64,000 nucleotides of DNA from Cyanophora paradoxa CCMP329 (taxonomy: Eukaryota > Plantae > Glaucophyta). The notes beneath the pieces were generated by a model. The model was not told the DNA's origin and did no database searches. It saw only the letters and a program-made list of their open reading frames with translations. The stretch is from contig QPMI01000142.1 of the NCBI GenBank assembly GCA_004431415.1, positions 52,335-116,334 of the forward strand, in the 5' to 3' direction. Below, piece after piece: positions 12,001 to 61,344 of this stretch; position 1 is the first letter of the stretch, and each line of letters opens with the position of its first letter. The position numbers and the translations under genes were made by a program.

Positions 12001-15000
12001 ATGCCCTGTCGGAAGGATGATAAGTAAAGAAGCTTCAAGCGCAAGTGAAGAAATGGTGGAACAGACGGACCTGGATGAAGAGGTTGATGAACCAGGTGAG
12101 GGAGTACTGGTACATGGGCTCGATGTTGGCGAGCTCGGCGATGCAGAAGAAGAGGGTCGAGGCGTGCCGCGCGACCGGCACGTAGCGCGAGCGCGTCTCG
12201 TCGATCTTCGTCTCCGTCTCCTCCGCCACCTTCTGCTTCTCGCTGATCTCGTTGGAGATGGTCTTGCTGCTCGCCAGGACCTGGATCGCCGACTCGTCCT
12301 CCAGGATGTTGCCCTGCGACGTGGAGAGCACGAGGAGGATCTTGTCCTCGATCTCCTTGAGCTGCTTCTTGTTGCTCGCGCTCTGCACGATGAGCGCGTT
12401 CTTCTCCTCCTCGAGCTCCGGGCGCTCCTTCGCGACGACGATGCCGAGCAGCTGGTCCTCCAGCCCCTCGGGCGTGATCATGAAGTTGAGGAGCGTGACC
12501 TTGGTCGCCAGCTCGGGGAGGTAGTGCGGGTTCCGCAGCTTGGTCGTGACGTAGAAGCGGAAGTCGGCGCTGTACTCGATGGTCGTGTCGCCGAGGCGGA
12601 TGCACTGCACGCCGCCCGACTTGAACGTCTGCTTCAGCAGCAGCGGCTCGAGCGCCGGGTCCAGCTCCTCGCCCACGTTCTCGAGGAGGACGGGCGTCCC
12701 GAACTGGATGGCGTTCTCGAGCGTGCGGAGGTAGTCGCCGTCCGAGAGCTTGATGACCGCCAGCTTGTTCGCCTTCTCCATGTTCTTGACCCACTTGTTC
12801 GCCTGGCCCTGGGGGTCGATCATGAGCGGCCACCTGCGCGAGCAAACGGGCGAGCGGGCGGGGTCAGGCGAGGGCCGAGCGGGAAGAGAGCGGCGAGGAG
12901 AGCGGCGGCGGCGCGCGCGCGCACCGGCGGGCGTTGGAGACCATGATGCCGTTCTCGGTGGAGAAGTTGTCGGCGGGGAGGCCCGACATCTGCCACGCGC
13001 GGATCTTGATGGGGTCGCCCAGCACCTTGACCAGCGAGAAGTGGTCGGCGCAGGGGATCTTGCGGGCCTTGCAGTGCTGCACCCACTCCTTGACGACCTG
13101 CTGCCGGAACGACGACGTGAAGGCGCCGAGGTACGCGACGACGGCCGAGGCGATGAGGACGTCGCCCGTCAGGTCGACGTACTCGGCGCCGAGCTCCTCG
13201 GCCGCCTTGGTCCAGCGGTCGCGCTCGCCGCCGAGCCCGCCGATGAGCTTCTCGGCGCGCTCGAGCTTCTTGGCGCAGAGGTCGACCTCGGCCTCGAGGT
13301 TCATCTTGCGCTGGTTCATCGCCTGGAACTGGTTGTTGAGCGCCGCCATCTTGTCCTCCACCTCCTTCAGCTGCGCCCGCTTCTTGTTGAGGCCCTCCAT
13401 CGTCACGTTGAACTCGCCCTCGGCCTTGGCCGCCGCCTCGCGCTTGGGGGCGACGACCTTGGCGACGCGGTCGTACGACTCGAGGGCGCGGACCCAGCGG
13501 CAGAGGCCCTCGGCGGCCGACGAGGCCTGCTTGACGCGGTCCGGCATGAACTCGGGGTTAGGGATGTACGTCTGCCGGATCTTCTGGATGATCGGCGCCG
13601 GGATGTTGTCCTTGTCGTACGCCTTGAGCGACTTCAGGAAGTCCGGGTCCGTCAGCATCTGAGCGGCGAGGCGACCAAGTCAATAACGGGCCGCCCCGCG
13701 AAACCGGGCAACGGAGCATCGATTTCACCTTCTTGGCCGGGTCCCAGAAGTCCTCGATCTTCTTGCCGGTGCCGGCGGGGTCGGGGATCCTGGCCGGCCC
13801 GATCCCCTTCATGACGCAGATGGCCTCCATGACGAGCTTGACGCCGGCCGGCGGGCTCTTCATGGACTTGACGAGGGTGATGTCCGCCGGCTTGAGCGTG
13901 TCGAGGGCCTCCATGGCGGCGTTGAGGATGGGGATCGCCTCCGCGAGGTCGGCGTCGCACTCGTCCTTGATCGCCTTCGCCTCGCGCGCCTTCTCGTTCG
14001 CGATCGCCTCCTCGCCCGAGACGACCTCCCGCGTCGCCGTCACCTGTCGAAAGCCCGTTAGGATGGCTGGTTTAAAACACAAAGTGTGTACTACAGAATG
14101 CGAGGAGCACCTCCTTGGTCTTCTCCTCGATGACGACCATCATCTCGGCCGTCTCCTTCTGCGCCTTCTGCAGCTCGGGCTGCAGCGCCACGAGCTGGTC
14201 CTGCATACCCTTGACCTGCACGCGCGCCCCGCCCGGTCAAGCCTCGGCGGAAATCACGCCGATTTCGGGTTGGTTGGAAGCGGACCTGGGAGGCGGTGAA
14301 GGCGAGCTTCTCGAGGCCGACCTCGTAGCGCTTCTTGAGCGTCATGACGTCGTTGCGCTTCTTGGCGAGGAGCGTCTTGAAGGTCGTGATGAGCTCCAGG
14401 TACGAGGTCGGCGTCACGTAGTTGTGGCGCTTGAGCTCGGCGAGGAACTGGGCCGAGAGCGCGCGCGTCGACTCGTGGAACTGCTTGCACATCTCGACGA
14501 CCTCGGAGCGGATGCCCTCCTCCATCTGGACCTCCTGCAGGAACTTGTTCGCGACGGCCGTGAGCGCGTCCTCGGGCCAGTCGCGGAACCAGTCGATGGT
14601 GCAGCAGTTGACGAGCGACGGGAACTGCCGCAGGCGCGTGCGGAAGGCGTCGCCGATGGGCGAGAAGCAGAGGACGACGTGCAGGTTCTGCTTGCACTGG
14701 TCCACGAAGAGCCCGTACAGCTCCGCCGGCGTCTCCATCGTCTTGTTCAGCTCCCGCGCGATCGGGCGCATCGCCTCGACGATCTGGGCGCGCTCGTCCG
14801 AGGGGTAGAGGTTGGGGACCTCGCCGGCGTTGAGGATGTTGGAGATGTCCTCCACGAACGACTCGTCCTTGATCTGCGAGTCGGTGAAGAGGAAGACGGT
14901 CTTCTTCTTCTCCGTGCCCGTCCGCCGCAGCAGCTTCTTCAGGTCGTCCCGCCACTCGATCCGCGTGTAGCTCTTGCTGATCTCGATCTGCGTCAGGTCC

Positions 15001-18000
15001 ATCTCCGCCATGTGCGCCGCCAGCCGCGTGACGGACTGCCGGCCCGAGCCGCCGACGCCGACGAGCAGGCAGTGCCCGCCGGGCGTCTTCAGCACGCGGG
15101 AGACGCGGGAGACGTGCTCGATGGCGAAGCGGAACATGACGAGGTTCATCGGCTTCTTGCTCAGCTGGTTGTACTCGTCCAGGTACGTCTCGATCACCTT
15201 GGTCAGCGCCGCCATGTCGGTGACCTCGTCGTAGCGGCGGTCGGCGGCGCCGGCGACCATGTAGTCGCCCCAGAAGAGGCTCCGCAGCTTCTCCTCGTTG
15301 ACGACGCCGTCCTTCTTCGTGTCCAGGTGCGCGCAGACCTTGTCGAAGAGGACGCCAAAGTGCTTCTGCGTCGTGTCCTTGATGGTCGTCACGAGCCACG
15401 AGCGGTCGGCGTCGTCCGTGAGGCGGTCGCAGAAGACGCGGAGGACCTCGTGCGTCCAGAGGCGGATGAGCTTCTCCGAGCCCGGCACCTGCTCGGCCTT
15501 GGCGAGGAGGACGCCCTGGATGACGCGGCTGAAGTCGCGCAGGTTGAAGAGGTAGTGCGACTTGGAGGGCGTCGGCAGCAGGTTCGCCATCGCGGCCTTG
15601 TAGACGTCGAGGGTGCCGCTGACGACGGCGCCCGTGAGGCGGTGCACCTCGGGCGCGAAGCCGTGCAGCTTGAACCACCAGTCCACGACGGTGGAGAAGA
15701 TGCGGGTGAGCGTCTCGTCGTCGAAGGCGGTGACGGAGACGAGGGGGAAGTGCCGGCTGAAGCGCGACGTGATGTTGTTGCGGCCGCCGCCGGGCGGGCC
15801 CATCGCGCAGATGAACTGGATGTCCTCCAGCTTGCGGAACGTCGTGTCCTTGCGGTCGTACCAGCCGCCGTGGTCCATCCACTGCCGCAGCAGCTCGATC
15901 GGCGGCTGCGCCGAGTAGACCTCCGGCTGCGGCATGTTCAGGTCGTCCACGAAGATGACGAACTTCTTGCCGCGCGGCGGGCCGAAGATGCCCTTGCGCC
16001 GCTTGTCCATCTTGCCGTCGATGATGTCCTGCGTCTGCGCCGCCGTCGTCTGCGCCGAGAAGTTGACGAAGATGGGGCTGAAGACGTCCTTGGGGAGCCC
16101 GTTCATCAGCTTGCTGTAGATGTACGCCGTCTTGCCCGTGCCCGTCGGCCCCACGAAGAGCGACGGGTGCCCGTGCAGCACGAGCGTCTCCAGCGCGTAC
16201 GTGTAGCGGACGGTGTCGACGGTCGGCACGATCACCTCGTGCGGCTGGGAGCCCTCCGGGGGCGACCAGGGGCGCGGGATGGTGTCCGTCCACGGCGCGA
16301 ACTTGCCCGTCGCCTTGTTGAAGAAGAAGTCGTAGACGAGGCCCTGGGAGGGGAAGAGCAGCGGCATCTTGCGGGGCGCCGGGTGGTGCGTGTTGGCGCC
16401 CGTGATGAGGGACCGGAAGAACGAGTCGAAGGCCTTGCGCCCGTCGACGTCCGTCGAGCAGCCGAGCGACCAGACGGCCGAGAAGAGGAAGAGGGCGTCG
16501 ATCCACGTGAGCGTCTCCTCGGCCTTCATCATGGCGCCCTCCTTGCCCGTCGCCTTGGCGTAGGCGGCCGGGTCCACGATCTCGTCGATGAGCGACTCGA
16601 ACATGTACATGAGCGCCCGCACGAGCTGGGCGTCCAGCGTCGGGCACGGCTCCTTCACCTCGCCCCGCACGAACTTGAGGCACGGGTTGACCAGCCAGTC
16701 GAAGAGGCTCTCGATGTTCTTGCGCGCCGCCTCGTCCAGGGCCGCGGGGAGCGTCGCGAGCCACGAGGTCTGCAGCGGCTTCCACCCCAGCTGCGAGGGC
16801 TCCATGTAGACCATGCCGCAGCGGGAGACGGTGGCCGGCGAGGCGAACGCCAGGTCGGCGACCTCGAAGATGAGGTTGAAGTTCTGGCTCATCTGGATGA
16901 TCTCGCCCGACATCAGGCACAGCTTCTTGTTGTCGTCCAGCACCGTGTTCATGTTCTCGATCCAGACGGCGTCGACGGGCCCGTCGAAGAGCATCCACTT
17001 GCGCTGCTCCGAGGTGTCGACGGAGCAGGCGCGGAACGTGTTGGCCAGCACGCCGTCCGTCCACTCGTGCGAGACGGGGTCGAACTGCCCGTAGAGCTGC
17101 CCCAGCGTGATCGACTTGGGGTTGAGCACGTGCAGCGTCACCTTGTGCTCCAGCGCCGGCTCCTTCGAGCCCAGGTCCGTCAGCGCGCCCGCCAGCACAC
17201 TGCGAACGACGGGCGGCGGCGGTCAGGCAAGGCCGAGCGGAGGGCGGGCGGGCGGGCGGGCGGGCGGGCGGGCGGACCGGTAGGCGGTGGTTTTGCCGGC
17301 GAAGGGCAGGCCGACGATCATGAGGCCGTGGCGGACGAGGATCATCTCGTAGAGCTGGATGACCTTGTTGAAGAAGGAGGGCACGGCCTGCAGGTTCATC
17401 TTCTTCGCGTTCTCCTCCATGGCGGCCATCAGGTCGGCGTAGTCGGGCTTGGGGAGGACGACGCCCGGGAAGAGGTCGCTGGTGATGCCGTCGAAGAGGG
17501 GCAGGTCGTGGGAGAGGAACTTGGGCAGGTTGACGTCGTTGATGGAGCGCAGCATGAGGATCGACTCGTCCTCCGTCGGGAAGCGCCGCTTGAGGTTGCC
17601 GGCCGCCGTCAGCACCGACTTGACGGCGCGCATGCCGTAGTCGTAATGGTCCTGCGACGAGAGCTGCTCGGAGCAGAGGCGGTACGTCGCGACGATCTTG
17701 ACGGCGAGCGCGCGGGCGTTGACGAAGCCGTAGGAGTAGAGGGAGATCTCGGCGATGAGGGCGTAGTCGGGGACCATCATCGCCACGGGGCGGAAGAGCG
17801 CCTTCAGGTTGTCGGGGAGCTCCGAGCGGCCGGCGTAGCCCGGGTTCATCGTGATGAAGACGGCGCAGGCGGTGTTGAGCGAGAGCTCCGTCCCCTCGAA
17901 CGTGAAGCGCTCCGCCTTGATGGCGATGGCGCGCTGGATCGTCAGGATCTGCTGCGCGATCACGGAGAGCACCTGCGGGCGGGCCGGGCGGGCGGCTGGG

Positions 18001-21000
18001 TCAGAGGTGGGCGGGCAGGCTGGGGCGCGGCGGAAGGAAAGACATGGCGCACCTCGAGGTCGATGCGGTTGAACTCGTCGAAGCAGGCCCAGGCGCCCGC
18101 CGAGGCCAGCCCCTTGAAGAACTTGCCCATGGCGATGTAGTCGAGGCCGTCCGAGCAGTTGAAGACGACGCACTGCTTGGCGACCGCCTTAGCGAGGTCC
18201 TTCGTCGACTCGGTCTTGCCCGTGCCGGCGGGGCCCTCCGGGGCGCCGCCGAGGTTGAGGTGCAGGGCGCCCATGAGGGTGCGGTAGCAGCGGTCCGTGA
18301 GGGGCGTGATGACGAGGCGGCCCGAGTTGCCGAGGTACTCGTAGCCATAGTTGAGCGTCGCGTTGATCATGCGGACCTTGACGTTGCCGTCCTCCCAGTA
18401 GTAGCGCAGCTGCGACGTCCACTCGAAGTCGTTCTCGTCGGAGATGCCGTCGTCGGCGAGCTGGCCGACGACGTCGCGCGCGTGCACGTCGATGACGACC
18501 AGGGCGCCCAGCGTGATGCGGCTCTGGTTCGGGAGCTCGCCGCGCACGAGGGCCACGATGTCCTCCAGCTGCGAGGTGCACTTGGCCTGGTAGGCGCGCA
18601 GGCCCTGCGAGCCGCCCTCGCGGATCGCCTCGGCGACCTCCTTCGTCCAGAAGATCTGCGAGCCGCAGAGGACGACCTGCCCGGGCCACTCCAGCACCCA
18701 CTTGGCGCGCGACGTCTGCGCCAGAGAGCGGGCGGGCGGGGGTCAGAGGAGGCGCGGCTAAAGCGGGGCGGGGCGGGGCGGGGCGCACGTTGGGGTAGCT
18801 GGCGATGGAGCGCTCGGTGATCTCGCGGATCGAGTTGCGCATCGTCTCCTCGACCTGGAGGAGCCACTTCTCGACGGCGCCGCGGGCCTCGTGCGGGCGG
18901 ATGATCGTCGAGAGCGCCACGCGCTCCTTCTCCGACGAGAACATGGCGATGACGTCGGTCCCGTCCTTGAACTCGAGGCTAGAGATGCCCTCGAAGCACT
19001 TCTTGAGGTGCGGCTGCACGCGCAGCGGGTCCTTCGTCTCCGAGAGGATCTCCAGGAGCTCGTCGTTCGAGAGGAAGAAGAAGCGGGGGAAGTAGAGGCG
19101 CTTCGTCTCCAGGTAGTCGTTGAGGCCCTTCTGGATGACGTCCAGCATCGAGTTCGCCTCCTGGAGCTTGGGGAGCAGGTTGCGGATCTGGGCGACGGCG
19201 AGGGCGTGCGGGTTCGCGATGACCTGCTTCATCGTCTCGCGCCACATCTTGTCGACGGCCTGGAACTTCTTGCCCTCCTGCGGCATCTGCTTCATGATGT
19301 CCTCGCTCCCGAAGATGGGCTCGAGGTAGAGCCAGGAGGCCTGGCACTTGAGCCAGGCGTCCAGGACGTCCTGGATGAGCGTCAGCGTCCGCTCCCACGC
19401 CTTGATCTTCTCCTCGAAGGGACGGATGAACGGCGAGCCCATCATCGTCTGCGTCTTCACGATGTGGTCCTCCAGCAGCGCCTGCGCGGCCGGCGGGCGT
19501 GAGGGGGGCAGAGCGAGGGGTTCGAGGGGGGTGAGGGGAGAGGGGGGGTACGGGGCGTAGGGGGCAATAGGAAGCAAAATGGCGGGCGCAGGGCAGGGGC
19601 GGCCTCTAGGCGGGCGGGCCCGGCGGGCTTGAGGGGGGGGGGGGGGGGGGGGCAGAGGGTTAGGGGGGTAGGCGTGACTCGTGAGGGAGGGGACAGGAAG
19701 AGGGACGGCGCAATAGGTGCGGGCAGGCCCGGAAAGAGTGAGCCGGAGGCGCGGGGGACGGGGGGCGGGCGGAGGGGGGTTGGGGGCGGAGGGGGGTAGG
19801 GGTAAGAGGGGTAGTAGCGGCGTAAGAGGTATTGCCAGCGTAAAAGGGGGTAGGGGTGGCGCAAGAGGGTTGGGCGAGCCCGGACCCCGCGGGGGGGGGG
19901 GGGGGGGGGGAAGAGGGGGAAGGCAGGGAAGGCAGGGGGTACCTGGATGTCGTCGACGGCGGAGAGGATGTGGGTGCCGGTCTCGCGGTAGGCGTGCACC
20001 GAGAACTCGATGGGCTGCCACTCGGCCTGCATCTTGTCGTACGTCTTCTCGAGGCTGTACTCCTTGGAGGCGTTGTCGGAGAGCTCCTGCAGGCGCGGCA
20101 GGTGCTGGTCCAGCTTCATCTTCAGCATCAGGTTCAGGTTCGCGCTCTCGTCCGGCCGGACTTGGAATCCGACGACGTTGGAGAGGCCCTCCCAGTGGCG
20201 CTCCCGCATGCCCGGGTTGCAGAGGACCTGGACCAGGGGCACGTACTGCCGGAACTCCTCCGCCTTCGCCTTGATGTGCTCCGCCACCGCCGCCGGCGCC
20301 GGCTTCTCCGCGAACGCCTGCGCCACGCAGCGTCAGCTCGGGGGCCCAAAGCGCGCTGGCGACGGGGCGGGGCGGGTCGCGGAGGAGCGGCGGGGTGGGG
20401 GGCGGGGAGGGAGGGTAGGGGAGAGGCGGGCCGGCGGGGGGCTAGGGGCGTATAGCGCAAGGAGGGGAGGGGTAGGCCGCCTCGGCGGGGGTAGGGACGC
20501 GAGGGTGGGCCGCCTCTGGGGGGGGGGGGGGGGGGGGGGGCGGGGGGGGTAGTCGGGGCGGAGTCGGGGCGGAGGGGCGGGGCCCGGAGAGCGTCTAGCG
20601 GAGGCGGGGGTACGCTGCCTCGGAGCGGGGTAGAGGCGTGAGGGGTAGGCCGCCTCGGGGGTGGGGGGGGAGGGGAGGGGGAGGGGGGCGACGGGGAGGG
20701 CGAGGGGGCCGGCGGGACGGGGCCCGGGAAGAAGGGGCGGGGCGGGGCGGGGAGCGGGCGGGGCGGGGAGCGGGCGGGGCAAGCGGGGCTAGGCGGGGGG
20801 CGGGGCGGACCTTGACGAGCTTGTAGGCGCTGCGGTACATCTCGCCGACGTCGCGCTCGACGCCCTCCGGGTCGAGGTTCTTGAAGGGGCCCTCCGTCCA
20901 CGCGTAGTAGTTCTTGTCGAACTCCTGCGCCAGCGTCCAGAGCTTCTCGAACGGCTCCAGGCCCTTCTTCGCGTTGTCGAGCTCCATGAAGAAGGAGCGC

Positions 21001-48698: not shown

Positions 48699-50768
48699 TT
48701 CTAGATCTGCGACTCATTTTCGATTGTTCGCAATTCCATTCTTCTCCATCCAGCGGTCGTGATCATATTTCAGGCAAGCCACTTAGCTAGAACTTGTCTG
48801 ACTTTCAATCCAAACCTGGCATATATATGCATATTTACTTGCCTACGTATACTTGCCTGGCGAAAAGGGCTCCGGGGTCAGGCCGAGCTATTAGCGGCCC
48901 GGTGTTGAGAGGATGGGTTGAGTTAAGATTAAGGGGCGGTGCGGCCTTTAGCTTGAGCTTCAGCTGAGCTCAACTCCTCACTTCGCGGTCCTTTCTTGGC
49001 GGAAATTCGCTGGAAAATCAACGCCGCGTGCAAGCGCACAAGAATTGAATTTCATGCGCAGCTTTTTAGTTTCGTTTGAAATGTGGTAGCGGGCTGTCCG
49101 TCGGACCTCCGAGGCTCTGGCTTTCGAGTTTCGAATCGAGCTACAGAGTCGCCGAATGCGAACGCCGTGCGTTCGTTGCGTCGGCAGTACTCACTGTCGG
49201 CTGCGCAGTTTTAGCTCGGAAGCTATAATTCGCCGCGCTAATTAGATTACTAATTATGTTCCAATTGTCGCGATTTCGTGGCAGGCGTATATTCTGTTGT
49301 GCACGTGGCTGCATATTGCAATTTGCAAGAATTCGAATTCGAAGCTGAAGGAGGAGCTGCGGAGCTGCGGAATGATAAGGCTGAACTCCATGCTACGGTG
49401 CCTTAATCAGGATTCCTGACACTCCGTTGCATCAGACCCGTTTCAAATCACTTTTCTTTTGATCGGGTCCGGCTCCGATGAACTCGAGATCGCCTCTGAC
49501 CCTGGAAAGGTGCGCCGCGCGCTCACGCATTTATGTCAGGGGCTCACGCGTCAGAAAAGCTTCACGGAGGCGCTGGGCCCCGTGTCGCACTCGTAGCTAT
49601 AGCCCCGTACCCCCTCGCCCGCATACCTGAAAGTATTGCCGTCAGCGGGGCGCACGGGGCGCCGTGGGCGCGGGAGGGGCTGGAGGTTGGCGTCGTGGCC
49701 GGCGTCCGGGACGGCCTCGAAGCTCTCGAGAATCGGAGGCCCCCCGGGGGCAGAGGGACCGCGCGGCAATTGCAAGGTTCGAGCGGCCTCCCCAAGGCCC
49801 GCCGCTCACAGGCGAGTCAAATGCCGACTTGGCGACGCCTTGGCGACGCTGCTTGGACGGCCCCGCCGATGGCGGCTCGACGCGCGGGACGGGCCGGGTC
49901 AAGGCGGGCGGCAGCGGCGGCGGCGTCTGCGTCGGGATGCGAGGGGGAGAGGAGGCGGGTGGCGGCGACGACGCCGGGTGGCTCAGTGGCGCGCGGCCGG
50001 GCTGGCGACGGTGGGCGGGCGTCGGGGCGCCAGCCCGGAGGCCCAGCCCGGAGGCCCGGAGGCCGGTTCGAATCTCCACCGCGCCGGTTCGTTATCGGTG
50101 GAGCCGCTCTGCCAGGCCCGCGCCATCGCCATTGATCGACACGCTCCGGGGCTCCTCCTCAATTGCCTCTTCGCCCATCCCCGGCCCCTCTGCGAGATCC
50201 ACTTGCCCCCGTACGAGGTCCCCCCGGATCCTCACCGGCGCAGGGGTATAGCGCGCCTGCTGGCTTCCCACTTCCGTGCACCGCACCCCTTCCTCCCGCC
50301 CGGCCTCCCCCCCCCCCCTTTCCTCCCTCCCTCCGATTCCGCCTCGCGATCGTAGTGCACGTGGGCACGGCTGCCGGCTGGGCGGCGTGCTGCTGTGCAC
50401 GCTCGGTGCGTATTTCGTTCATCTCGCTCGCTACCCGCTTGGCAGGGCCGCACTCGTGACGGAATGCGACAGGGAGGCGCGGGTGGAGGCGCGGGCAGCG
50501 CGCCTCTCGCACTTCGCGGGCGGCCCCGCGGGGGGCAGGACGATGGGTACCTCCTCCGGGCGTACCGGGCGGCTCGAACAGGGTGCAGGACGATGGGTGC
50601 AGGACATCGGGGGGTACCGGGCAATCTCGAACGGTCTCCTCCGGCGGCACGCAGGGTCCGACGTTCAGCGGGCCGGGGCGGCCGCATCTTCGGGAGGACG
50701 AGGGGATCGGGGCGCTCCATAGTGTGGCTCCCGCGGCCGCCACCTCCTCCTCCTCTCCCCTTCACCTC

Positions 50769-51495
50769 CTCCGGTGCTCACGCCCCGCGCCTGGCCATGG
50801 GGGCCCCCGCGGCTCGGCCCGCGGAGGCTCTTGGGCGGGCGCGGCGAGGCGCCGCAGGACCTCGTTGGCCGTCTCAGAGTCTTCGTGACGCCGACTGTCT
50901 TCGGGTACGAGTGGTCGCCCTCGTTTGACGGCGTTCACAGCGCGCCGAAACACCGCAGGCGACGAACCGGTTGTCTTGCTGCCCGGAGGCGAGGCCCGTG
51001 AGGAGGAGCGGCTCCCACGCGGCCGGCCGCGGCCCCGCTTCGGCGCGGCGGCCACCTCCTCCGCCGCCACCGCCTCTTCCATCGCCTTCGCCACCGGCAC
51101 GGCCGCCAGCGCTAGCACCGGCACCGCCGCGGGCGGCGGCTCCCTCGGCGTGAGCTGCAGCGCCCCGCGGTGCGCCTCGCGGGGGCGGGTCGCGTGGCGG
51201 CGGCCGCTCCGGTGCTCACGCCCCGCGCCTGGCCATGGGGGCCCCCGCGGCTCGGCCCGCGGAGGCTCTTGGGCGGGCGCGGCGAGGCGCCGCAGGACCT
51301 CGTTGGCCGTCTCAGAGTCTTCGTGACGCCGACTGTCTTCGGGTACGAGTGGTCGCCCTCGTTTGACGCCGTTCACAGCGCGCCGAAACACCGCAGGCGA
51401 CGAACCGGTTGTCTTGCTGCCCGGAGGCGAGGCCCGTGAGGAGGAGCGGCTCCCGCGCGGCCGGCCGCGGCCCCGCTTCGGCGCGGCGGCCACCT
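50769..51495. repeat. 438-bp tandem duplication; unit 2 starts at 51207 and resumes at 54247-~54414 after element B
   Basis: Near-identical sequence offset by 438 nt (146 codons). Confidence 0.9.
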
Positions 51496-51501
51496 TTTTT
51501 T

Positions 51502-51757
51502 GCAAAAGTGGACGTCGCATTAAGAACACCACGGCACATGTCCTAATGTCCTGATCGACGCGCCCTTCCGACGCGGTCGACTAGCTAAGAGTAGGCGATG
51601 GTCTAGCTAGTCGCCGGCCTTGGGTCGTCCAGTTCAAGAGGCTCGCTTGCCCAGGGGACACACGGCTTGCAGATGCGCTGCTGCACCGTGGCCAACGCGC
51701 CCGGGTTTGTGAGTGGTTCCATCCCGTTGTGAACCCTGGTAGAGCTTGGCTCCGCAC
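51502..51757 (-). ncRNA. conserved structured 3'-terminal RNA module (element B version)
   Basis: Shares ordered islands with A (CCAGGG, GGGATGGA, GGGCGCGT, CGACCCA.GGCCGGC, GTCGGAAGGGC, ACATGTGCCGTGGTGT, AATGCGACGTCCACTTTTGC); the intervening stems covary. Confidence 0.6.
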
Positions 51758-52536
51758 TTGCAAAAGTGTAAGTGTAGGCGGTGATGGGGGACGATCGCTG
51801 CCGCCTGTCGTACGTGATCGCCGTCCCCAGCAGAGAAGAGGTGGGGCCCTCCAGGCTCGGCTCCTCTGCAGTCCGTCGTCGTACCCGCCCCAGTACGAAC
51901 GGCCGGGGTCCACATGAGAGAGCTGCCCGGTCCACCCCTCTCCGCCCCCCCCCTCCCCCCCCCGAAATTAGGTCCCAACGGAGGGTACGAGGGAGAGCCG
52001 CTCCTGCCCGCCTGCCCCCCCCCCTACCCCGCCCTCCTACCCCCCCCCCCAAGAGAGAGCAAGGTTGTGAGGGTGAGAAGGTAGAATAGTGGAGGCCAAT
52101 AAAGAGAGTGTGGAAAGAAAAACAGAGCTGTCGAAGAGCTGTCGAGTTTCGAGATATCTGTCAAAAAGTGAAGTTCGCGCTCCGGACGCCGTTTACCTCA
52201 AGCTGAAAATACCTCAAGCTGTTAAAATGCACTGCAAAGAAGGGGATCGGAAGCGAGCGTACTGCTGCAAGGGAAAACTGCAGGGATCGTCGAAAAAACC
52301 AAAAGCACATGCACATGCATTGAAAACGCTGTCACAGGGGACAGGCTAAAATGGGAGACTGTCACATTAACTTGAGAGCTGCCCAAAGGAGAGAGAAAAA
52401 TTACTGAGTGGCTGAGGGGAGAGAGGAGGGAGAGGGACGGGGGAGTGGCCGACGGCGGGAGAAACCCCTAAAGGAAATTGAGAGGGGGCGGAAAAAACTG
52501 CCGCTGCGTCAGGGGGAAGAGAGGAAAAGGGGCAGC

Positions 52537-54169
52537 CTAGCGCTTGGCCTTGCCCTTGCCCTTCGCCTTTGCGAGAGCCGGGGCGAGGGCCGCAGCGAGG
52601 GCCGCCGCGGTCAGGGGCGGCGAGGGCTCGGCGGGGCGGGCGAGGGCGGCAAGGATCGCCTGGGCGTCGGCGGAGAGGCCGCTGCCGCGGCTGGCCGCGC
52701 GGTTCTTCTTGAGGAGGCGGCGGAGGAGCTGCTCCACGTCCTCGTCCGAGTCGGAGCCGCGGCGCGGCGACTGGGAGCGGGAGCGGGAGCGCTGGCGGCG
52801 GCGGCCGCTGGAGGAGCTGCCGCCGGCGCCCGCATCGCGCTCGAAGAGGTTGGTGTGGTGGCTGGCGTGGGAGGCGAGGCTGACCGAGTCGTCCTCTGCG
52901 AGCTCGCGCCGCATGCGGCCGATGGCGGCGGCGAGCTCCTGGGGGCCGGGGAGGGCGCCCGGGGCCGCGGGCGGGGCGGCGGCGGCGGCGCCAGCGGCGG
53001 GCTCATCGAAGTGGGCGGCGCCGAGGGCGGCGGCGGCGGCCTCCGCGCCGTCCGCGGCCTCCTCGCGCGCACGCCCGTTGGCCATGCAGTTGAAGGTGTC
53101 GGGGTGGGCCCAGGCGTCCGTGGTGAGGTGTCCGCGCAGCGGGCAAGATAAGGAAGGAGGAGGGCGGGCGCCAGAAGTGCGCACGTGCGTGCAGAAGCAA
53201 CCGCCGTTGCCGTTTTCGTCGGCGCCGAGAGGCTCGTAAAGCGCCGCATCGACGTTGCGCGCTGCGTCGAAGTGCTTGAGCCACCGCCCGCGGTGCTCGC
53301 CCTTCGGGTGCAGCACGAGCTGCCCCGAAACGATTGTGAAGTCCGCCTCGGTGTAGTAGACACGGTAGGCGTTTGGGACGGTGCCGTTCATCCGCTGCTT
53401 GTTGGCAAGGCGGATGTGGTGCGGCGGCGCCAGAGTCACGACCGAACGGAGCGCCTCGCGGACCTTCGAGGAGAGGAGAAATGAGAGGAGAAGAAGAGAC
53501 ATTTATAATTAAGAGTTCGCAAACCGTGGCCTCCGTAAGCGGGCGGCCATTGGCAGTCTGCACGCCGAGGAGAAGGAACTTGGTCGGCATGCCGCCCGGC
53601 AGGGAGCGCGCGACCGCCACGTCGAAAGCGGACAGGAGGTGGCGCTTGTACACCAGAGCGTGGTCACGCGACGCCTGCTCCAGCATGCGCGCAAACTGGC
53701 ACGCGGAAGCGTGTTAGGGTGCGCTCAGGCGGCGAGAGTGTGCGCGCAATGCGCACGTGGAGATCGACGCAGACGAACAGCTTCGTGTGCGTGAAGGGAC
53801 GAGAGGGTGGAAGGAGTCCTTCATCACGAAGGCGCAGATGTTGGAGGACTGCTGGACAGAAGGCACCGCGATCTCCGCCGCGGCAGGGTCCTCAGCAGGC
53901 TCTCCGGCAAAGGGATTGCCGTCGAAAGCTGGCGCTCCTTGCTGCATCGGCTCGTCGCCCCAACGAGCTCCGATCGCGACCGGAGCAGCGCCCGCGGCCG
54001 CTGCAGCAGCTCCAGCGAGATTCGGGTGCGGTGCCGGAGCCAACGGTTGTGCGTTGGCCGGCGCCGGCCCGCCCGGCAGCTGGGTGAGAGGTCAGGAAAT
54101 TTTTTCGGTCGAATTTTCGGCCGGCGCGCGGCAGCGTACCGCTAGGAGACCAGAAGGAGGAGGCTCCAT
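52537..54169 (-). CDS. spliced ORF1/Gag-like protein of element B (~480 aa; RRM-like segment, Cys/His motif, RS-rich and basic tail)
   Basis: ATG at 54169; GT-AG introns 54139-54080, 53756-53696 and 53524-53464; one +1 correction is needed in a C-run near 53810. KFLLLGVQTANGRPLTEAT|VREALRSVVTLAPPHHIRLA...NAYRVYY is RRM-like; FCTH...CPLRGH...C follows. Confidence 0.65.
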
Positions 54170-54542
54170 GGCCTGGCGCGTGTCGGGAGAGCGTTGGGCC
54201 GCAGATGCGGAAGGGTTGGATCTTTCCAGGGGGGTACGGAAAGTCCCGGCGCGGCGGCCACCTCCTCCGCCGCCACCGCCTCTTCCATCGCCTTCGCCAC
54301 CGGCACGGCCGCCAGCGCGAGCACCGGCACCGCCGCGGGCGGCGGCTCCCTTGGCATGAGCTGCAGCGCCCCGCGGTGCGCCTTGCGGGGGCGGGTCGCG
54401 TGGCGGCGGCCGCCGCACTCCACCACCTCCTCCTCCCCATCGCTCCGGCCGCGCAACGCCGGCCGCTGGGTTTGCGCGGCAAGCAGCGGTGCCGCCCCTC
54501 GCCCCTCGTGGCACCAGCGGCCCTCGGCCTGGGCAAGCTTTT

Positions 54543-54919
54543 CACCTCGACAAAACGGGACACCGATTAATCGGGGTCCTGGGGCGCAGGTGAGGAGGAG
54601 GGAGGAGGCGGAGTGGGGAGGAGGAGGCGTGGCGGAGCGGCGGCAAGGGAGGGCGGCGGACTGCGAGACATCTCACTTCCAGGGCTCATGAGGGATGGAG
54701 GAGTTGATCAAGGGGTGGGCGCGTGGGTCTGGTTACGGCTATCACCGAAAACCATGGCTCCCCCACTCAGGCGAACCTCCCATATTGAGCGACCCATGGC
54801 CGGCACCTAGCTAGCACCATCGGCTAGATAGATGACCGGTCGGAAGGGCACGTCACGTAGAACATTGATACATGTGCCGTGGTGTATCAATGCGACGTCC
54901 ACTTTTGCAAAAAAAAAAA
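54543..54919 (+). mobile_element. 5'-truncated copy (A') of LINE element A
   Basis: Near-identical to the reverse complement of 56855-57232; A11 tail; 17-19-bp TSD TCGGCCTGGGCAAGCTT(TT) at 54524-54542 and 54920-54938. Confidence 0.93.
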
Positions 54920-56866
54920 TCGGCCTGGGCAAGCTTTTGCAGTCCTCGCCGTCGTCGGAACCCCCGCCGCCACCAGGGCACCGCCCCGCGCTTCGATCGC
55001 GGCGTCTGCGGCCCCCCGCCTGCCTCCCGACTCGCTCCCTCCCCCGTCATCGTCGCCAGTCCCCCCCTCCCGATCGCTCGCGACTCGTCCCCCCCTTCCT
55101 CCCCCTCCCCCTCCTCCTCGTCAGTCTCAACGTGCTCGGCCCGCTTGGGCCCCTCCAAGGACGCCCGCCCGGGCCCCTCCAGCGCCCGGATCGCCGGCCC
55201 CTCGTGCGCATGCTCGGCAGCGGCGCGCTCCAGGCACGCCAGCGCCGCGCGTGCCTGCGCGGCGGAGCGTCAGAGGCGCGCGGGGTGGGTGCACGCTGCG
55301 GTGGGGGCGGAGGCCGGGTGGGCGGCGCGCCTCGCGCTGCGTCCTGTGGCAGCCGTGCATCGTAGCGGTCCTCGGCGTGTGCTGGGGGAGCTGCTCCGTC
55401 CCCTTGATGCGCTGGCGGCGGCCGCGGCGTCTCGCTCGATCCGGGGATATCGATCCGCCCCGGCCCTTGCAATTGGCCGCCTGGTCGCGCACCCAGGTCG
55501 ACGCCACGGCGCGCATCGTCCGCGGCGGCATTGGCAAGCCCGTTCAGCGGCAGAAGCTTAAGGCCTCCGCTTCGCCCGCCCCCGGTCGCTTTCTACCGCC
55601 CCTCGACCGCGCGCTGCTCGGCCCGTCCTGGATCCGCATGCCATGATGCTCACTGAGTCAGGATCGACATGGGGAGGCCGCGCCGCGCCGGGCTGGTCGA
55701 GAAGAAGCTGAGGAGGAGGCAGTCCCGCAGGTGCTTCGCCTTTTGCCACGGCTTCTCCTCCGCGCCCCCCCTCAGGGCCTGAGCACGCGCTCGAACTCAT
55801 CGCAGCTCGTCCGCTGCCGCAGTGCCGCCACGTCTTCTCCGTCTTTGACTCATGATCAGCGACGAGCTGGTTCGTACGTTCGTTGCTGAAAGAGGCTGGG
55901 CAATGGGTCGTGAGTAGAAGAGCTCGTTTCCAAAAACGGTTTGATTTTGTCTGTGATCGCAATTCTGCGCAGTGCACGGTGCGTGTCCGACGGTCGCCCC
56001 AGGCGCCGCGGGCCCGCCGGGCCGGCAAGGGCCGGCGGGCATGCGCAGGCGCGCCTCTTGCTTGAGGCCGGCAACGATGCCAACCCGCAGCTTCTGTGCG
56101 AGGTTCTCGATGAGATTGCTACGGCCGCCGGCCACAATCTCACGGGCACGACGCTGCCCAGCGGCGCATCGTGGGCTGCCCTAGCCTAGTAGGCCTTAAC
56201 GTCGCCGTGACGATTTGGGCTGCGGCCGTGCCTCGCCCCCGCCGCCGGCCGCCGGCCCATGGCGCGCTGGCCATGGAGCTGCCGCAGTGCGGCCGGGGCT
56301 GCCGCCGGGCTGGCCGCTGTGTCTCTCCGGTGGGTATTTGGCGTTCTCCGCTGGGCGGCGGCGGCGGCCGTGGGGCGGAACAGCGCCGACCCTGCCCCGA
56401 GGCCCGAGGAGGTCGAGCTCGCCCTCGCTCAGGGCGTATGGCTGCCGCGACGTCGCCGAGTCGACTCGGAGCCGGCGGCGGGGGGCGGGGCGGCCTTCGA
56501 ATTATGCACGGCCAACGCCACTGGACCACCGGCACGGGCAGCGAGGGGGCCCAGCTACCTTTAATTTGGAAAGGCGGGCGAGGCGGCTCGGTCAATTAAT
56601 ATTGGCGTGAGCGGGCGCCCGTCGGCGTCGCAGGGGGCCCCTATCCGAGGCTCGCGCCGATGTAGCCCATTAGCGCACCTCTGCGCCAATACCCTCTGCG
56701 CCACCTCTGCGCCGCGTTTCGACTCGGGAAGTGGACTATATTGCAACGAGGCCAGATTTAACCCGGCAAAACGACAGATTTAACCCGGCTAACGGCAGAT
56801 CTATAGCTATATAGCTAGCCTAGAACTAACGCTAGCTATAGCTAGCGTCGAGCATTTTTTTTTTTT

Positions 56867-57114
56867 GCAAAAGTGGACGTCGCATTGATACACCACGGCA
56901 CATGTATCAATGTTCTACGTGACGTGCCCTTCCGACCGGTCATCTGTCTAGCCGAAGACGCTAGCAAGGTGCCGGCCATGGGTCGCTCAATATGGGAGGT
57001 TCGCCTGAGTGGGGGAGCCATGGTTTTCGGTGATAGCCGTAACCAGACCCGCGCGCCCACCCCTTGATCAACTCCTCCATCCCTCATGAGCCCTGGAAGT
57101 GAAATGTCTCGCAG
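56867..57114 (-). ncRNA. conserved structured 3'-terminal RNA module (element A version; also at 54661-54908 on +)
   Basis: Hairpins CATTGATACA/TGTATCAATG, CTAGC/GCTAG and TGAC/GTCA; several A versus A' differences cluster in the CTAGC/GCTAG loop. Confidence 0.6.
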
Positions 57115-60100
57115 TCCGCCGCCCTCCCTTGCCGCCGCTCCGCCACCCCTCCTCCTCCTCACTCTGCCTCCTCCCTCCTCCTCACCTGCGCCCCAGGACC
57201 CGATTAATCGGTGTCCCGTTCTGTCGAGGTGAAGAAGGTGGTAGGAGGAAGATATGAGGAAGGAGAGGGAGTGGGCGGAGGCAGCGGAGGGGTGGGCAGC
57301 GGATGCGGGGCAGGGCAGGGAGCGGTGCCGGGACGGCAGAGTGGAGTGAGCGTGGGCACTGACAGGCGGCGCAGAGAGCGGGGAGTGCGGAGACGAGGCG
57401 GGTCGCGAGGGGTCGGGAGGGTCGGTCTGAGTAGGGGGGTGGCCGAAGCCAGAGGGGTGGCCGAGGCCGATGGGGTGGCCGAAGCCGGGGGGGGCCGAAG
57501 CCGATGGGTGGCCGAAGCCGAGGGGGGGCCGAAGCCAGTGGGGGGCCGAAGCCATAGGGGTGGCCGGAGTCAACGAGGGGTTCGACACTTGTGAGTCGGT
57601 TGGGGCCGGGGGAGGGACCGTAGGGGGCGGCGGGGCGGCATCGTGCGGGGTCCCGGTCGGGGGGGCCGGCTGAAGCGAGGAGGGGGGGGGAGAGTCGGCT
57701 ACTGGAAGCGTCGTTAGTGGTTTGTACACTCCAGGTGCGAAGAGGGACGTGATTGTGGGTTGTGCAGCGGGTATCGACACCGTTCGCGCTTTTTTGGTTC
57801 CGCGCTTGGGGGTCTTGCGACCGGCTGCCTTTCTTTTCGCCGTAGGTACGGGTGGGGCGGGTGAAGAGGCGGGAAGGGGAGGGTCATGGGCGCGGGCGTT
57901 TGGGTGCCGGGGCGGGGGAGTATCGGTTGTCCGTTTGCGTGAGGCAGGCGACGGGCGAGTTCGTTTCGAGGGAGGGCCAGGGGGCGTTGGGGCGGGGCGC
58001 TTGGAAGGTTGAGTAGCGGACGTAGGGCCCGCGGGCAAAGCGGGCAGGGTGCCATTGTCGGGGTTCTTGTGGGAAGGTTGCGTTGGGGGTGCAGCAGGTT
58101 GGGAGGCAGATCTAGAGTATGAAGTGGTCTCAGGGCGAGCGGGGCACTTTCCCCGTCTGGCGTCGGAGTGGGCCTGGAGGGCAGCTGCGGAGGCAAATCG
58201 GGTGCCACAGGTGCAAGAGAAGTCAGATGTCATGGCTACGGTGCCGGCATTGGGCGGCTGGGGGAGGGGGGGCCTGGGGGAGGGGCGGTCTGGGGCGAGG
58301 GGAGGCAGGGAGTCGTGCAATTGCCTGGCGGAAATTTTCCAGGAGAACCCATGGTTGGCTTTCCGAGTCCAATCCGCAGCAGAAGTCAGTGATGGAGATG
58401 GTATCATGGAGGGAGGGGCGGGGGGGGCGGGGGGGGAGGGGGGGACCAGGCGGTTGTACTGGCGGCGAGCGGGAGGGTTTGGTGTCGGCATGTTTGCGGT
58501 ATCGACGTTTGGTTCTGTCAGTGATGCCTTGTCGGAGCTCCCAGGCGTGGTTGCGGGCGCAGCGGTCCCTCCAGATCGCACGGAGGTGTTGGTCGAGGAG
58601 TAGCGCTAAATCTTTTTGGATTGACATTGTGGTGGTTTTGTTGATGCCCAGGGCTGTGCAGAGGGCGGCAATCCTGCCGGGGTACCGAGGCGCAGGAGGC
58701 AGGGGCGGGGAAGGGGAGCATGTCAGCCAAGGCCGGGCTAAGCTTTGTCCATAGGGTATCGGTGAGACCTGGGGGGCGGAAAAGGGCCGGATTTTCGGTG
58801 GGGGAGAGGAGGGCGGATTGGAGGGGAGAGGCGGGGTCAGGGGAGACGAGGCGGAGGAAGGGAAAGAGTTGAAAAATAGTATCGTCGTGTCCTAAGGGTT
58901 TGGGCGAGTGGCGGAGAACCCGGGTGCGGAGGAAGGTCACGAGTGTGTCCTGGAGAGCTTGGAGGAGGAGGCGAGCGGCGGGGCAAGTAAATATGTGAAT
59001 GAAGTCTTCGGGGGGTGGGTTGTGGGTCGGGCTGTCTGGGGTCTGCGGCCCTCGGTGGGGAAGAGGGCGGGGGGAGCCCGGGGGGTGCACGTGGCAGGGG
59101 CGGGAGGGTGGGAGTGGGAAGCAGGGTCCTCGGGGACTGGGGCAGGGGTGGGAGGGAGGTGACAGAAGGGGCAGTGGGCGATACCGTCAGGAAAGAGAGG
59201 GCCGTATAGGTCGGGGTCGTGGAGGAGGCGGATGGTGAGGGAGGGAGGCCTCCAAGAATGCACTGGAATCTGACTTTGCGGAGGTGATCGCCTGTGGGGG
59301 TACGGCGGTCCGGTGGCTTGTCGGACACGAGGGAGAGGGCTGGGGCGAGGGTAACGTGAGGATTGCTGAGGACGGCCCCCGCGTTGCGAAGCTGGCGCCA
59401 GTCGAGGTATTGGGAGAGGAGGCTTCGGCTAGGAAGTGAGAGCGGGGGTCCCCTCAACGCGGTATGCATGGAGTCTGCCTCTGTAGGGCTCGGCTCCTGG
59501 AACTGGGCCTTGGGATGACGGGGCGGGAGGCCGACGCGGATGAGGAAGCATTTGAAACTGTGGGGAATGAAGAGAAGGGCTGAGAGGGGGGCGTCTGGGG
59601 TCGTTTTGGCAAGCTTGTCAACGGCGTCATTGTGGCAGTTGTCAGGAGTATAGGCTGGGTTCGGGATACGGTTCTTGGCCGGGGTCCGGGCCGCCTCTTT
59701 CTTTGCGACTGTTTTAGATGTTTTGGCGGACCGTGGTGGCGGCTGGGCGGCGTCGCGGTGGGCGGCTTCAGCTAGGATGGTCGCCGCCTCGAGTGGGGTC
59801 ACGTGGGACGGCCGGAAGAGACGGCGTGCTGTTGCGGAAGCTTCGTTGCGGGCCAGGTCAGCGAGCTGAGAGGCGAGTTCTTGGGCGTAGCGAGCACCGG
59901 GAGGGAGGGGGGTGGCGGGCCCTGCAGGGCGAGGCGGGGTAGACTCAAGCACAGTTGGGGAGCGCGGGAGGGCTGGGTGGTCGGGGGAGGATGGTGGGGA
60001 GTCTAGGGTAGGCAGGGTGCCGCCAGTGGAGACCGGGGGGCGGCGTGGCAGTTGGGGACGCCCCGGGAAGGTCGGTGGGGGCCTGAGGGCCGGGAGGGCA

Positions 60101-60139
60101 GGACCACAGCATATAGGGTCAAGGGTGACGGACCCGTAG

Positions 60140-60850
60140 CAGAGGCTGAGGGCAATATATTCACGGTATCTGCGGAGCGTTGCATTGTCGACCTGAATGT
60201 AGGCTGGGGGGCGGGGCAAGTCCGACGGGGCAAGTGCTGAGGAGCGACTGAGTAGGTCAGCTGTGAGGAGGAGGAGAGGGCCGCAGGCCGTGCTGTTGGG
60301 GGGCTGGAAAACGGAGAGGGATGTCTCCGGGCGTAAATAGGTCCATCTGCAGAATGGAGTGAGGGGGAGGGGGGAACCAGAGTCGCGGTGACTCCAAGTG
60401 GCCGCCAAGTCTTGTGCAAAGGAGACAAGGTGATCAGGGACGTCGAGGGAGCCGTTGTGAATGTAGAACGAGTGCGTCTGAGGAAATAAAGCGAGTAGGT
60501 GCCAGTGTCCCGGGGGGGCCTGAGGGTGCCGGGATCTGCCTGAGGGAAGGGTCGGCGAGGGGGCTGGTGGGGTATGATGAGTGGGGCGATAGGTAAGGAT
60601 GGGGACAAGGACAAGGCGGGCATCGAGAAGGCGTCCGGGGGGAAGGTATTGGTGCAGAGGGAGAAGGGCAGAGCCCCGAGAGTCAAATTGGGAGGCTGCA
60701 CTAGCGGGGTAGGAGCTGGACGACAGGAAGTAGGCAGGGTGAGGCGAGGCCAGGGCGGCTTCACGGGAGGAGAGCATGTCAAGGAAGGCTTCCACAAGGG
60801 GGAGGCTGAGGGCGGCATTCGGCCGGAGGTGGATAAGGTCGCCTCGTCGA
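60140..60850 (-). other. Ulp1/peptidase C48-like domain with catalytic His and Cys present
   Basis: DLIHLRPNAALSLPLVEAFLDML...AYFLSS...LVLVPI...GHWHLLAL...YIHNGS...QPPNSTACGPLLL...RRYREYIALSL. Confidence 0.75.
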
Positions 60851-61344
60851 ATGAGGGAGTGGCGATGAGGGTCAGGTCGGGGGGCGGGTGGGAGGGGGGG
60901 TTTCGACATGAGAGTTTGCTCCGCGCAGTAATCATTGTCTGCAAACCGGAAGGCATTCCCCAGCCAACTTTTCTCCGCCAGCGTCAGGGGGCGAGGGAGG
61001 GAAATTCAGTCGGGTGAGCGGGGGTTCGGCCTGGGGAAGCAGTTGGTCGGGCCTCGGGCGCCGGGGGCGTGGGGGTGGGAAGGCAGGGTGGGGGGGGGTG
61101 GGGGCTGCGGGGAGGAGGGAGGGGAATTGGGAGACCGGGGGGTTACCGGTGTAGGGACGGGGGGGAGAGGGAGGACGGAAGGGAGGAGGGGTGGGGTCTC
61201 GCTTGCGTCTGACCGGACGGCGGGCTTTGGCTGCCGTGTGCTGGGAGGGCGGGAGCTGGTGCGCGGGGTCATGCGCTGTCGTTTTGTTGTGAATGCCGGG
61301 TCGTTGGCCTGGACTGTCCCCAGGAGAACCTCAGGGTCCCGGAG

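Follow-up and report, generated by a model that had tools for sequence, protein, structure and literature searches.

A shared 3′ tail with compensated base pairing in poly(A)-tailed retroposon insertions of Cyanophora paradoxa: a probable cis-acting terminal module of a LINE-type family

The minus strand at 56867–57114 of the window (by which we mean the whole 64-kb stretch of Cyanophora paradoxa DNA that was analysed) is probably the cis-acting module (~240 nt, followed by poly(A)) at the 3′ terminus of a non-LTR, LINE-type retroposon family whose members end in poly(A). Three parts of this reading are inferred: that a reverse transcriptase binds the module, how precisely it folds, and that its full 240 nt are required. 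It would most likely be a 3′ recognition module of the stringent LINE type.

Results

Three retroposon insertions carry the tail

Scans of the 64-kb window with nhmmer, and with a covariance model covering the final 113 nt of the tail and run with filters off, recovered exactly three copies, designated A, A′ and B. An earlier note had described a covarying, probably pseudoknotted RNA at the 3′ ends of three elements; the motifs that it quoted are all present, on the minus strand at 56867–57114 and in the two further copies. The copies and their flanking features are as follows.

56867–57114, minus strand: 3′ tail module of copy A, aligned with A′ and B and recovered by both nhmmer and the covariance model
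56855–56866, minus strand: poly(A) of copy A, a 12-T run on the plus strand
54543–54919, plus strand: copy A′ element, a 5′-truncated copy of A of ~378 bp with an 11-A tail and 97% identity to A
54663–54908, plus strand: tail module of copy A′, inside the preceding element
54524–54542 and 54920–54938: target-site duplication of A′, a perfect 19 bp, TCGGCCTGGGCAAGCTTTT
51502–51752, minus strand: tail module of copy B, the 3′-terminal part of a 2.75-kb unit (51495–54246); 64% identity to A
51495–51501, minus strand: 7-A tail of copy B
51479–51494 and 54247–54262: target-site duplication of B, 16 bp, CGGCGCGGCGGCCACC
51041–51056: empty, uninterrupted paralogous site of B

A, A′ and B are retroposon insertions. 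Poly(A) lies immediately 3′ of the module in each of them (12, 11 and 7 nt in A, A′ and B, respectively), the RNA-sense strand of A ending in ...CCACUUUUGC and then poly(A), and the hallmarks of target-primed reverse transcription are present: A-runs, target-site duplications (A′ and B) and 5′ truncation (A′). No duplication is found in copy A at the point where A′ begins, so the A element probably continues upstream as a longer element. The neighbourhood of B includes a local tandem duplication (50769–51495 and 54247–54413), the repeats of which, D1 and D2, are 98–99% identical. This duplication carries both the empty and the filled B site, which dates the B insertion to after, or around, the duplication.

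Across ~250 columns of the tail, A and B share 64% identity. Upstream of it, the best local alignment between them scores 26, as compared with a mean of 21 and a maximum of 33 for shuffled sequences, and the matched sequence is G-rich and of low complexity. Since this is no better than shuffles, the tail is, as judged from these alignments, the sole sequence common to the A element and the otherwise unrelated B unit. Identity within the tail is blocky, the longest three identical runs totalling 46 nt against 27 expected (P 0.001), and the invariant blocks include the last 20 nt, a 15-nt hairpin loop region and the 11-nt GUCGGAAGGGC.

Compensated pairing is specific to the poly(A) strand

Strand-specific compensated pairing is present in the tail, and the module is probably a folded RNA. 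The covariation claimed in the earlier note was said to come from a three-way comparison; compensated pairing between A and B was borne out, while the comparison is really two-way, A and A′ being 97% identical, and the fold tests rest on two independent lineages, A/A′ and B. The RNAalifold consensus of A and B has an energy of -59.6 kcal/mol and an SCI of 0.67, compared with -40 ± 5 kcal/mol and 0.46 ± 0.05 for column shuffles. On the sense strand, the z-score of the consensus energy is -3.7 to -3.9, with 0/300 shuffles as good; the antisense (reverse-complement) alignment gives a z of only -1.2. A pairing signal found only on the poly(A) strand is expected of an RNA with G-U pairs and not of a DNA palindrome, and a palindrome at the DNA level was rejected on account of this strand specificity.

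Two further comparisons were made against a permutation null, in which the substitutions of B were shuffled among the variable columns. The MFE fold of A, predicted without reference to B, keeps 65 of its 80 pairs in B, compared with 59 ± 2 in the permuted sets (P 0.004), and of the pairs in this fold that are changed on both sides, eight of 11 can still form where 4.3 would be expected (P 0.018). The MFE fold of B does not keep its pairs in A beyond permutation (P 0.9). In the consensus structure of the three-row alignment there are eight compensatory pairs, and 0–2 when the partners are slid by 1–3 columns. The sequence-based alignment mis-registers one hairpin by one base on each side, so the true number of compensated pairs exceeds eight; folded alone (57018–57046 in A, 51659–51691 in B), this hairpin has five outer pairs that all differ between A and B and are all paired. 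No single arm reaches significance when tested by itself (P 0.06–0.3), and the stability of the whole tail is ordinary relative to dinucleotide shuffles (z -0.9 for A and -1.4 for B).

Two of the pairings put forward in the earlier note are harder to place in this structure. The motifs of its TGAC/GTCA stem are there, and as a helix it is mutually exclusive with two helices of the consensus. The lower stem of Arm II, a rival of TGAC/GTCA, is compensated by the same T-to-C column, and because that column serves both helices, the change cannot discriminate between them. The pseudoknot, in which the loop GUGCC would pair with its proposed partner, is possible. Apart from a single change of A-U to G-U, the bases of both its proposed helices are invariant, and they fit nested helices as well.

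Predicted arms and the extent of the signal

The RNA most likely forms, in the predicted consensus, three successive arms followed by single-stranded CCACUUUUGC and poly(A). In copy A they are placed as follows.

56980–57096, minus strand: Arm I, long and irregular, with helices 3–8 and a capping hairpin at 57018–57046
56934–56977, minus strand: Arm II, a GGCCGGCA/UGACCGGUC helix (helix 9) capped by a CUAG hairpin with a variable loop
56875–56929, minus strand: Arm III, the 3′-terminal hairpin stacked on a GGCACGUC/GACGUCC helix (helices 11 and 12)
56867–56876, minus strand: invariant single-stranded end CCACUUUUGC, overlapping the last bases of Arm III

Independent predictions for A and for B both contain Arm II, Arm III and the hairpin that caps Arm I. 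The terminal hairpin (56883–56912) has a stem of 10–11 bp and an invariant loop of 8–10 nt. All 11 pairs of its stem (helix 12) are kept, although two have had both bases replaced and a third has had one base replaced, in agreement with the variable stem and invariant loop of the earlier note. Folded alone, Arm III has z-scores of -1.0 in A and -1.6 for its equivalent in B. The hairpins TGGTTACGG/CCGAAAACCA and CACGGTGCAG/CTGCAAGCCGTG, which had been proposed to correspond, are indeed predicted at the equivalent place when each is folded alone (z -2.0 and -1.8), and the alignment confirms that the CTAG stem carries three different loops. In Arm I, GGGUGGG/CCCACUC of A corresponds to CCCGGG/CCUGGG of B.

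It is conceivable that all ~240 nt, with the three arms and possibly a tertiary contact between loop and strand, are needed for docking by the enzyme of a glaucophyte LINE that is L1-like and ends in poly(A). The module would then exceed in size, several-fold, every tail so far described for the clade, and its presence alone would suffice for the mobilisation of long, unspliced transcripts of the cell. We put this forward tentatively, as a doubtful extension of the main reading. We consider it unlikely, in turn, that only the last ~60 nt (the terminal hairpin, its invariant loop and the CCACUUUUGC end) constitute the signal, the upstream 180 nt being a co-inherited 3′ UTR with a fold that is a by-product of GC-richness and common descent; this is nonetheless the alternative that survives best. 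A short signal would be of the size of known L1- and L2-clade tails, which are ~45–60 nt long (PMC3472496, PMC1636434), and it would fit the stability of Arm I, which does not exceed that of shuffles (z +0.4 and +0.7), as well as the per-arm tests and the MFE fold of B described above. Against it, invariant blocks of 7–15 nt also lie 100–230 nt from the 3′ end despite an overall identity of 64%. Five of the eight double changes in Arm I preserve pairing, and the outer stem of its capping hairpin has been wholly replaced between A and B yet remains paired. Arm II, moreover, is clearly stable in both lineages (z -2.8 in A and -3.6 in its B equivalent, 51570–51619).

The 5′ limit of the shared sequence

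The homology between A and B begins abruptly, and its 5′ limit could be the junction of a chimera in B as opposed to a functional boundary. Another explanation, which we regard as improbable, is that the module exists independently, as a small RNA or a SINE-like unit, and is joined to other RNAs by template switching: the reverse transcriptase would copy the module, run off its 5′ end and jump to the 3′ end of another RNA, one ending in CACUUUUGC(A)n. In favour of this are the abrupt start of the homology and the presence in the window of four occurrences of the 11-mer CACTTTTGCAA, where only 0.28 are expected by chance even with one mismatch allowed. Three of these are the tail ends, and the fourth (51758–51768, minus strand) lies within a few bases upstream of the start of the B tail; it is possibly the trace of a template-switch junction, or else what is left of the end of an older tail. 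This is, however, a single junction; there is no relation to tRNA, 7SL or 5S RNA that would supply a pol III promoter, and the module of A directly follows a long element, with no internal CACTTTTGCAA motif.

Searches for known RNA families

The Rfam search that the earlier note had recommended (Rfam 15) returned no family at gathering score anywhere in the window, and with E-values up to 5 the only match on any copy of the tail was a sub-threshold one to a snoRNA family, overlapping the 3′ end of A. ARAGORN found no tRNA-like gene in 50500–58000. A tail derived from tRNA or 7SL RNA, which the note had named as an outcome that would count against its idea, is thus not indicated by either program; tRNA-, 7SL- and 5S-derived tails were all rejected on the basis of the Rfam and ARAGORN results. 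An R2 3′ UTR element was likewise rejected, having no match to an Rfam covariance model (if the release holds R2), as was a known ribozyme, with no match in a library that includes hammerhead, HDV-like, twister, pistol and hatchet models. Scans of metagenome contigs (two exact patterns) and of prokaryote genome contigs for exact patterns gave 0 matches, and our search of the literature on Cyanophora LINEs found nothing specific.

These results bear on the functions that had been suggested for the fold, namely a platform for recruiting reverse transcriptase, a nuclear-retention element or a ribozyme. The first of these is favoured by the position of the tail, its sharing between elements, its non-coding character and its pairing; the other two found no support. 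A self-cleaving ribozyme is a very improbable reading of the fold, and so is a nuclear-retention element: invariant loops and possible loop-to-strand pairings are all that speak for either, set against the Rfam results given above. The known ribozymes of LINEs are located at their 5′ ends. Furthermore, all three DNA copies contain full tails, so copying began at the extreme end of an RNA that had not been cleaved.

Coding potential and the sequence upstream of copy A

We give almost no credence to the notion that the conserved stretch encodes the C terminus of a protein of the element. A 579-codon ORF of copy A (56842–58581, minus strand) does remain open through the tail and poly(A). Its frame is interrupted by two stops in the 97%-identical A′, however, and none of the three sense frames of B is free of stops; the conserved blocks are also shifted into different frames between A and B by indels of 1, 2 and 5 nt, and two protein searches yielded no relatives of the ORF or of the tail translation. 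Judged by its reading frames, the tail module is non-coding. In those searches, HMMER gave 0 matches for a 587-aa ORF that includes the tail against 1.84 billion representatives, and a word-index protein search gave none for the 95-aa tail translation. The same index returned no match for the 722-aa upstream ORF among 8000 candidates scored, a set probably dominated by proline-rich words, and an exact look-up of one ORF of the B unit returned no record.

When the minus-strand ORFs at 57–64 kb were compared with Pfam and with PDB sequences, no catalytic domain and no reverse transcriptase was identified. The only Pfam match upstream of A was a C2H2 zinc finger with an E-value of 0.0012, below the cut-off. 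One ORF (58840–61005, minus strand) contains an HW...D...Q..N..CG pattern; it was blank in the Pfam and PDB sequence searches, and a language-model search placed it nearest to Peptidase_C48 (Ulp1) clusters (0.88–0.89), which we treat as a lead only. Any reverse transcriptase of the A element would lie beyond the edge of the window, which itself shows none, and A is at this point a candidate part of an autonomous LINE.

Several other features were observed around copy A. Directly 5′ of its tail, a hairpin of ~85 bp is predicted in the sense RNA (57115–57304, minus strand), with a pyrimidine-rich 5′ arm, a purine-rich 3′ arm and many G-U pairs; the sense orientation folds at -135.6 kcal/mol (z -8.3) and the antisense at -120.1 kcal/mol (z -4.9). 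B has no counterpart of this hairpin (z -1.1). The truncation of A′ falls inside its 5′ arm, ~12 nt before the apex, and the hairpin is the source of sub-threshold matches to miRNA families in Rfam. At 57437–57578 (plus strand) there are six tandem units of 17–18 nt (GGGTGGCCGAAGCC...), which the minus-strand ORF reads as GFGHP-type repeats. On the other side, just outside the poly(A) of A, lies a CTAG-rich, near-palindromic stretch of TATAGCTA and GCTAGC units (56745–56854, plus strand), preceded by two direct repeats of CAGATTTAACCCGGC. This stretch may be the end of another element that A entered; the Arm II stem of the tail is likewise built of CTAG units. The window as a whole is GC-rich and eukaryotic, and dynein heavy-chain exons are found at ~10800–20100 (minus strand; Pfam DHC_N2, AAA_7, AAA_8 and Dynein_heavy, with E-values down to 1e-109).

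Discussion

Returning to the reading that we favour, a terminal module of a LINE-type family, the following mechanism is proposed. The reverse transcriptase of the A-type element would bind the folded tail, most likely reading its loop and its 3′ strand, both of which are invariant, while the stems serve as a scaffold, and would then prime on the poly(A) at the nicked target, that is, by target-primed reverse transcription. Any RNA bearing the module could in this way be copied into the genome, which would explain the insertion of the unrelated B unit with a target-site duplication. Copy B, seemingly an unrelated RNA that shares only the tail and was inserted all the same, is the strongest hint of function in the window.

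The arrangement of a shared 3′ tail is of a known kind, and the module described here is unusually large. Stringent LINEs and the elements that hitch-hike on them share 3′ tails with covarying hairpin stems and conserved loops (PMC3472496, PMC4176376, PMC1636434); L1-clade elements of maize, sorghum and Chlamydomonas have such tails together with poly(A) (PMC3472496). Separate regions of ORF2 recognise the stem and the loop of the zebrafish L2 tail (PMC4176376), and the structure of the eel hairpin has been solved (PMC1636434). As with eel UnaL2/UnaSINE1, zebrafish ZfL2, maize LINE1-1_ZM with ZmSINE2/3, and Chlamydomonas L1-1_CR, the 3′ module is common to a long element and an unrelated non-autonomous unit. 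It also resembles the stringent LINE and SINE tails in having a terminal hairpin whose stem carries compensatory changes and whose loop and flanking bases are conserved, and the L1-clade tails in having poly(A) after the module. The differences are of size, partner and host, here a glaucophyte: the tail of C. paradoxa is ~240 nt long with three predicted arms, whereas the known tails are ~45–60 nt with one hairpin, and the hitch-hiker, B, is a unit of 2.7 kb and not a tRNA-derived SINE. No reverse transcriptase of an autonomous partner was seen in the window.

The R2 protein binds a multi-helix element in the 3′ UTR, pseudoknotted in the zebra finch, and starts reverse transcription (PMC12222951). 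The fold predicted here is comparable to those of Bombyx R2Bm and zebra finch R2Tg in having multiple helices, and in both cases a single-stranded tract runs from the last helix to the 3′ end. Unlike the R2Tg element, which is pseudoknotted, the present tail has no support for a pseudoknot, and whereas R2 is specific to rDNA and has no requirement for poly(A), the present copies lie at unrelated sites and carry poly(A).

To a specialist the finding will be unsurprising, and its value lies mainly in annotation and in the provision of a defined RNA to test. If the module is a docking signal for reverse transcriptase, the RNAs open to copying by this algal LINE can be told by its presence. Copy B is a natural test of sufficiency, being an unrelated RNA that carries only the tail. 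It has been proposed that ancestral LINEs of the L1 clade recognised a specific 3′ structure and that this recognition was later relaxed in some lineages (PMC3472496); a structured, stringent tail on a poly(A)-ending glaucophyte element would fit that proposal.
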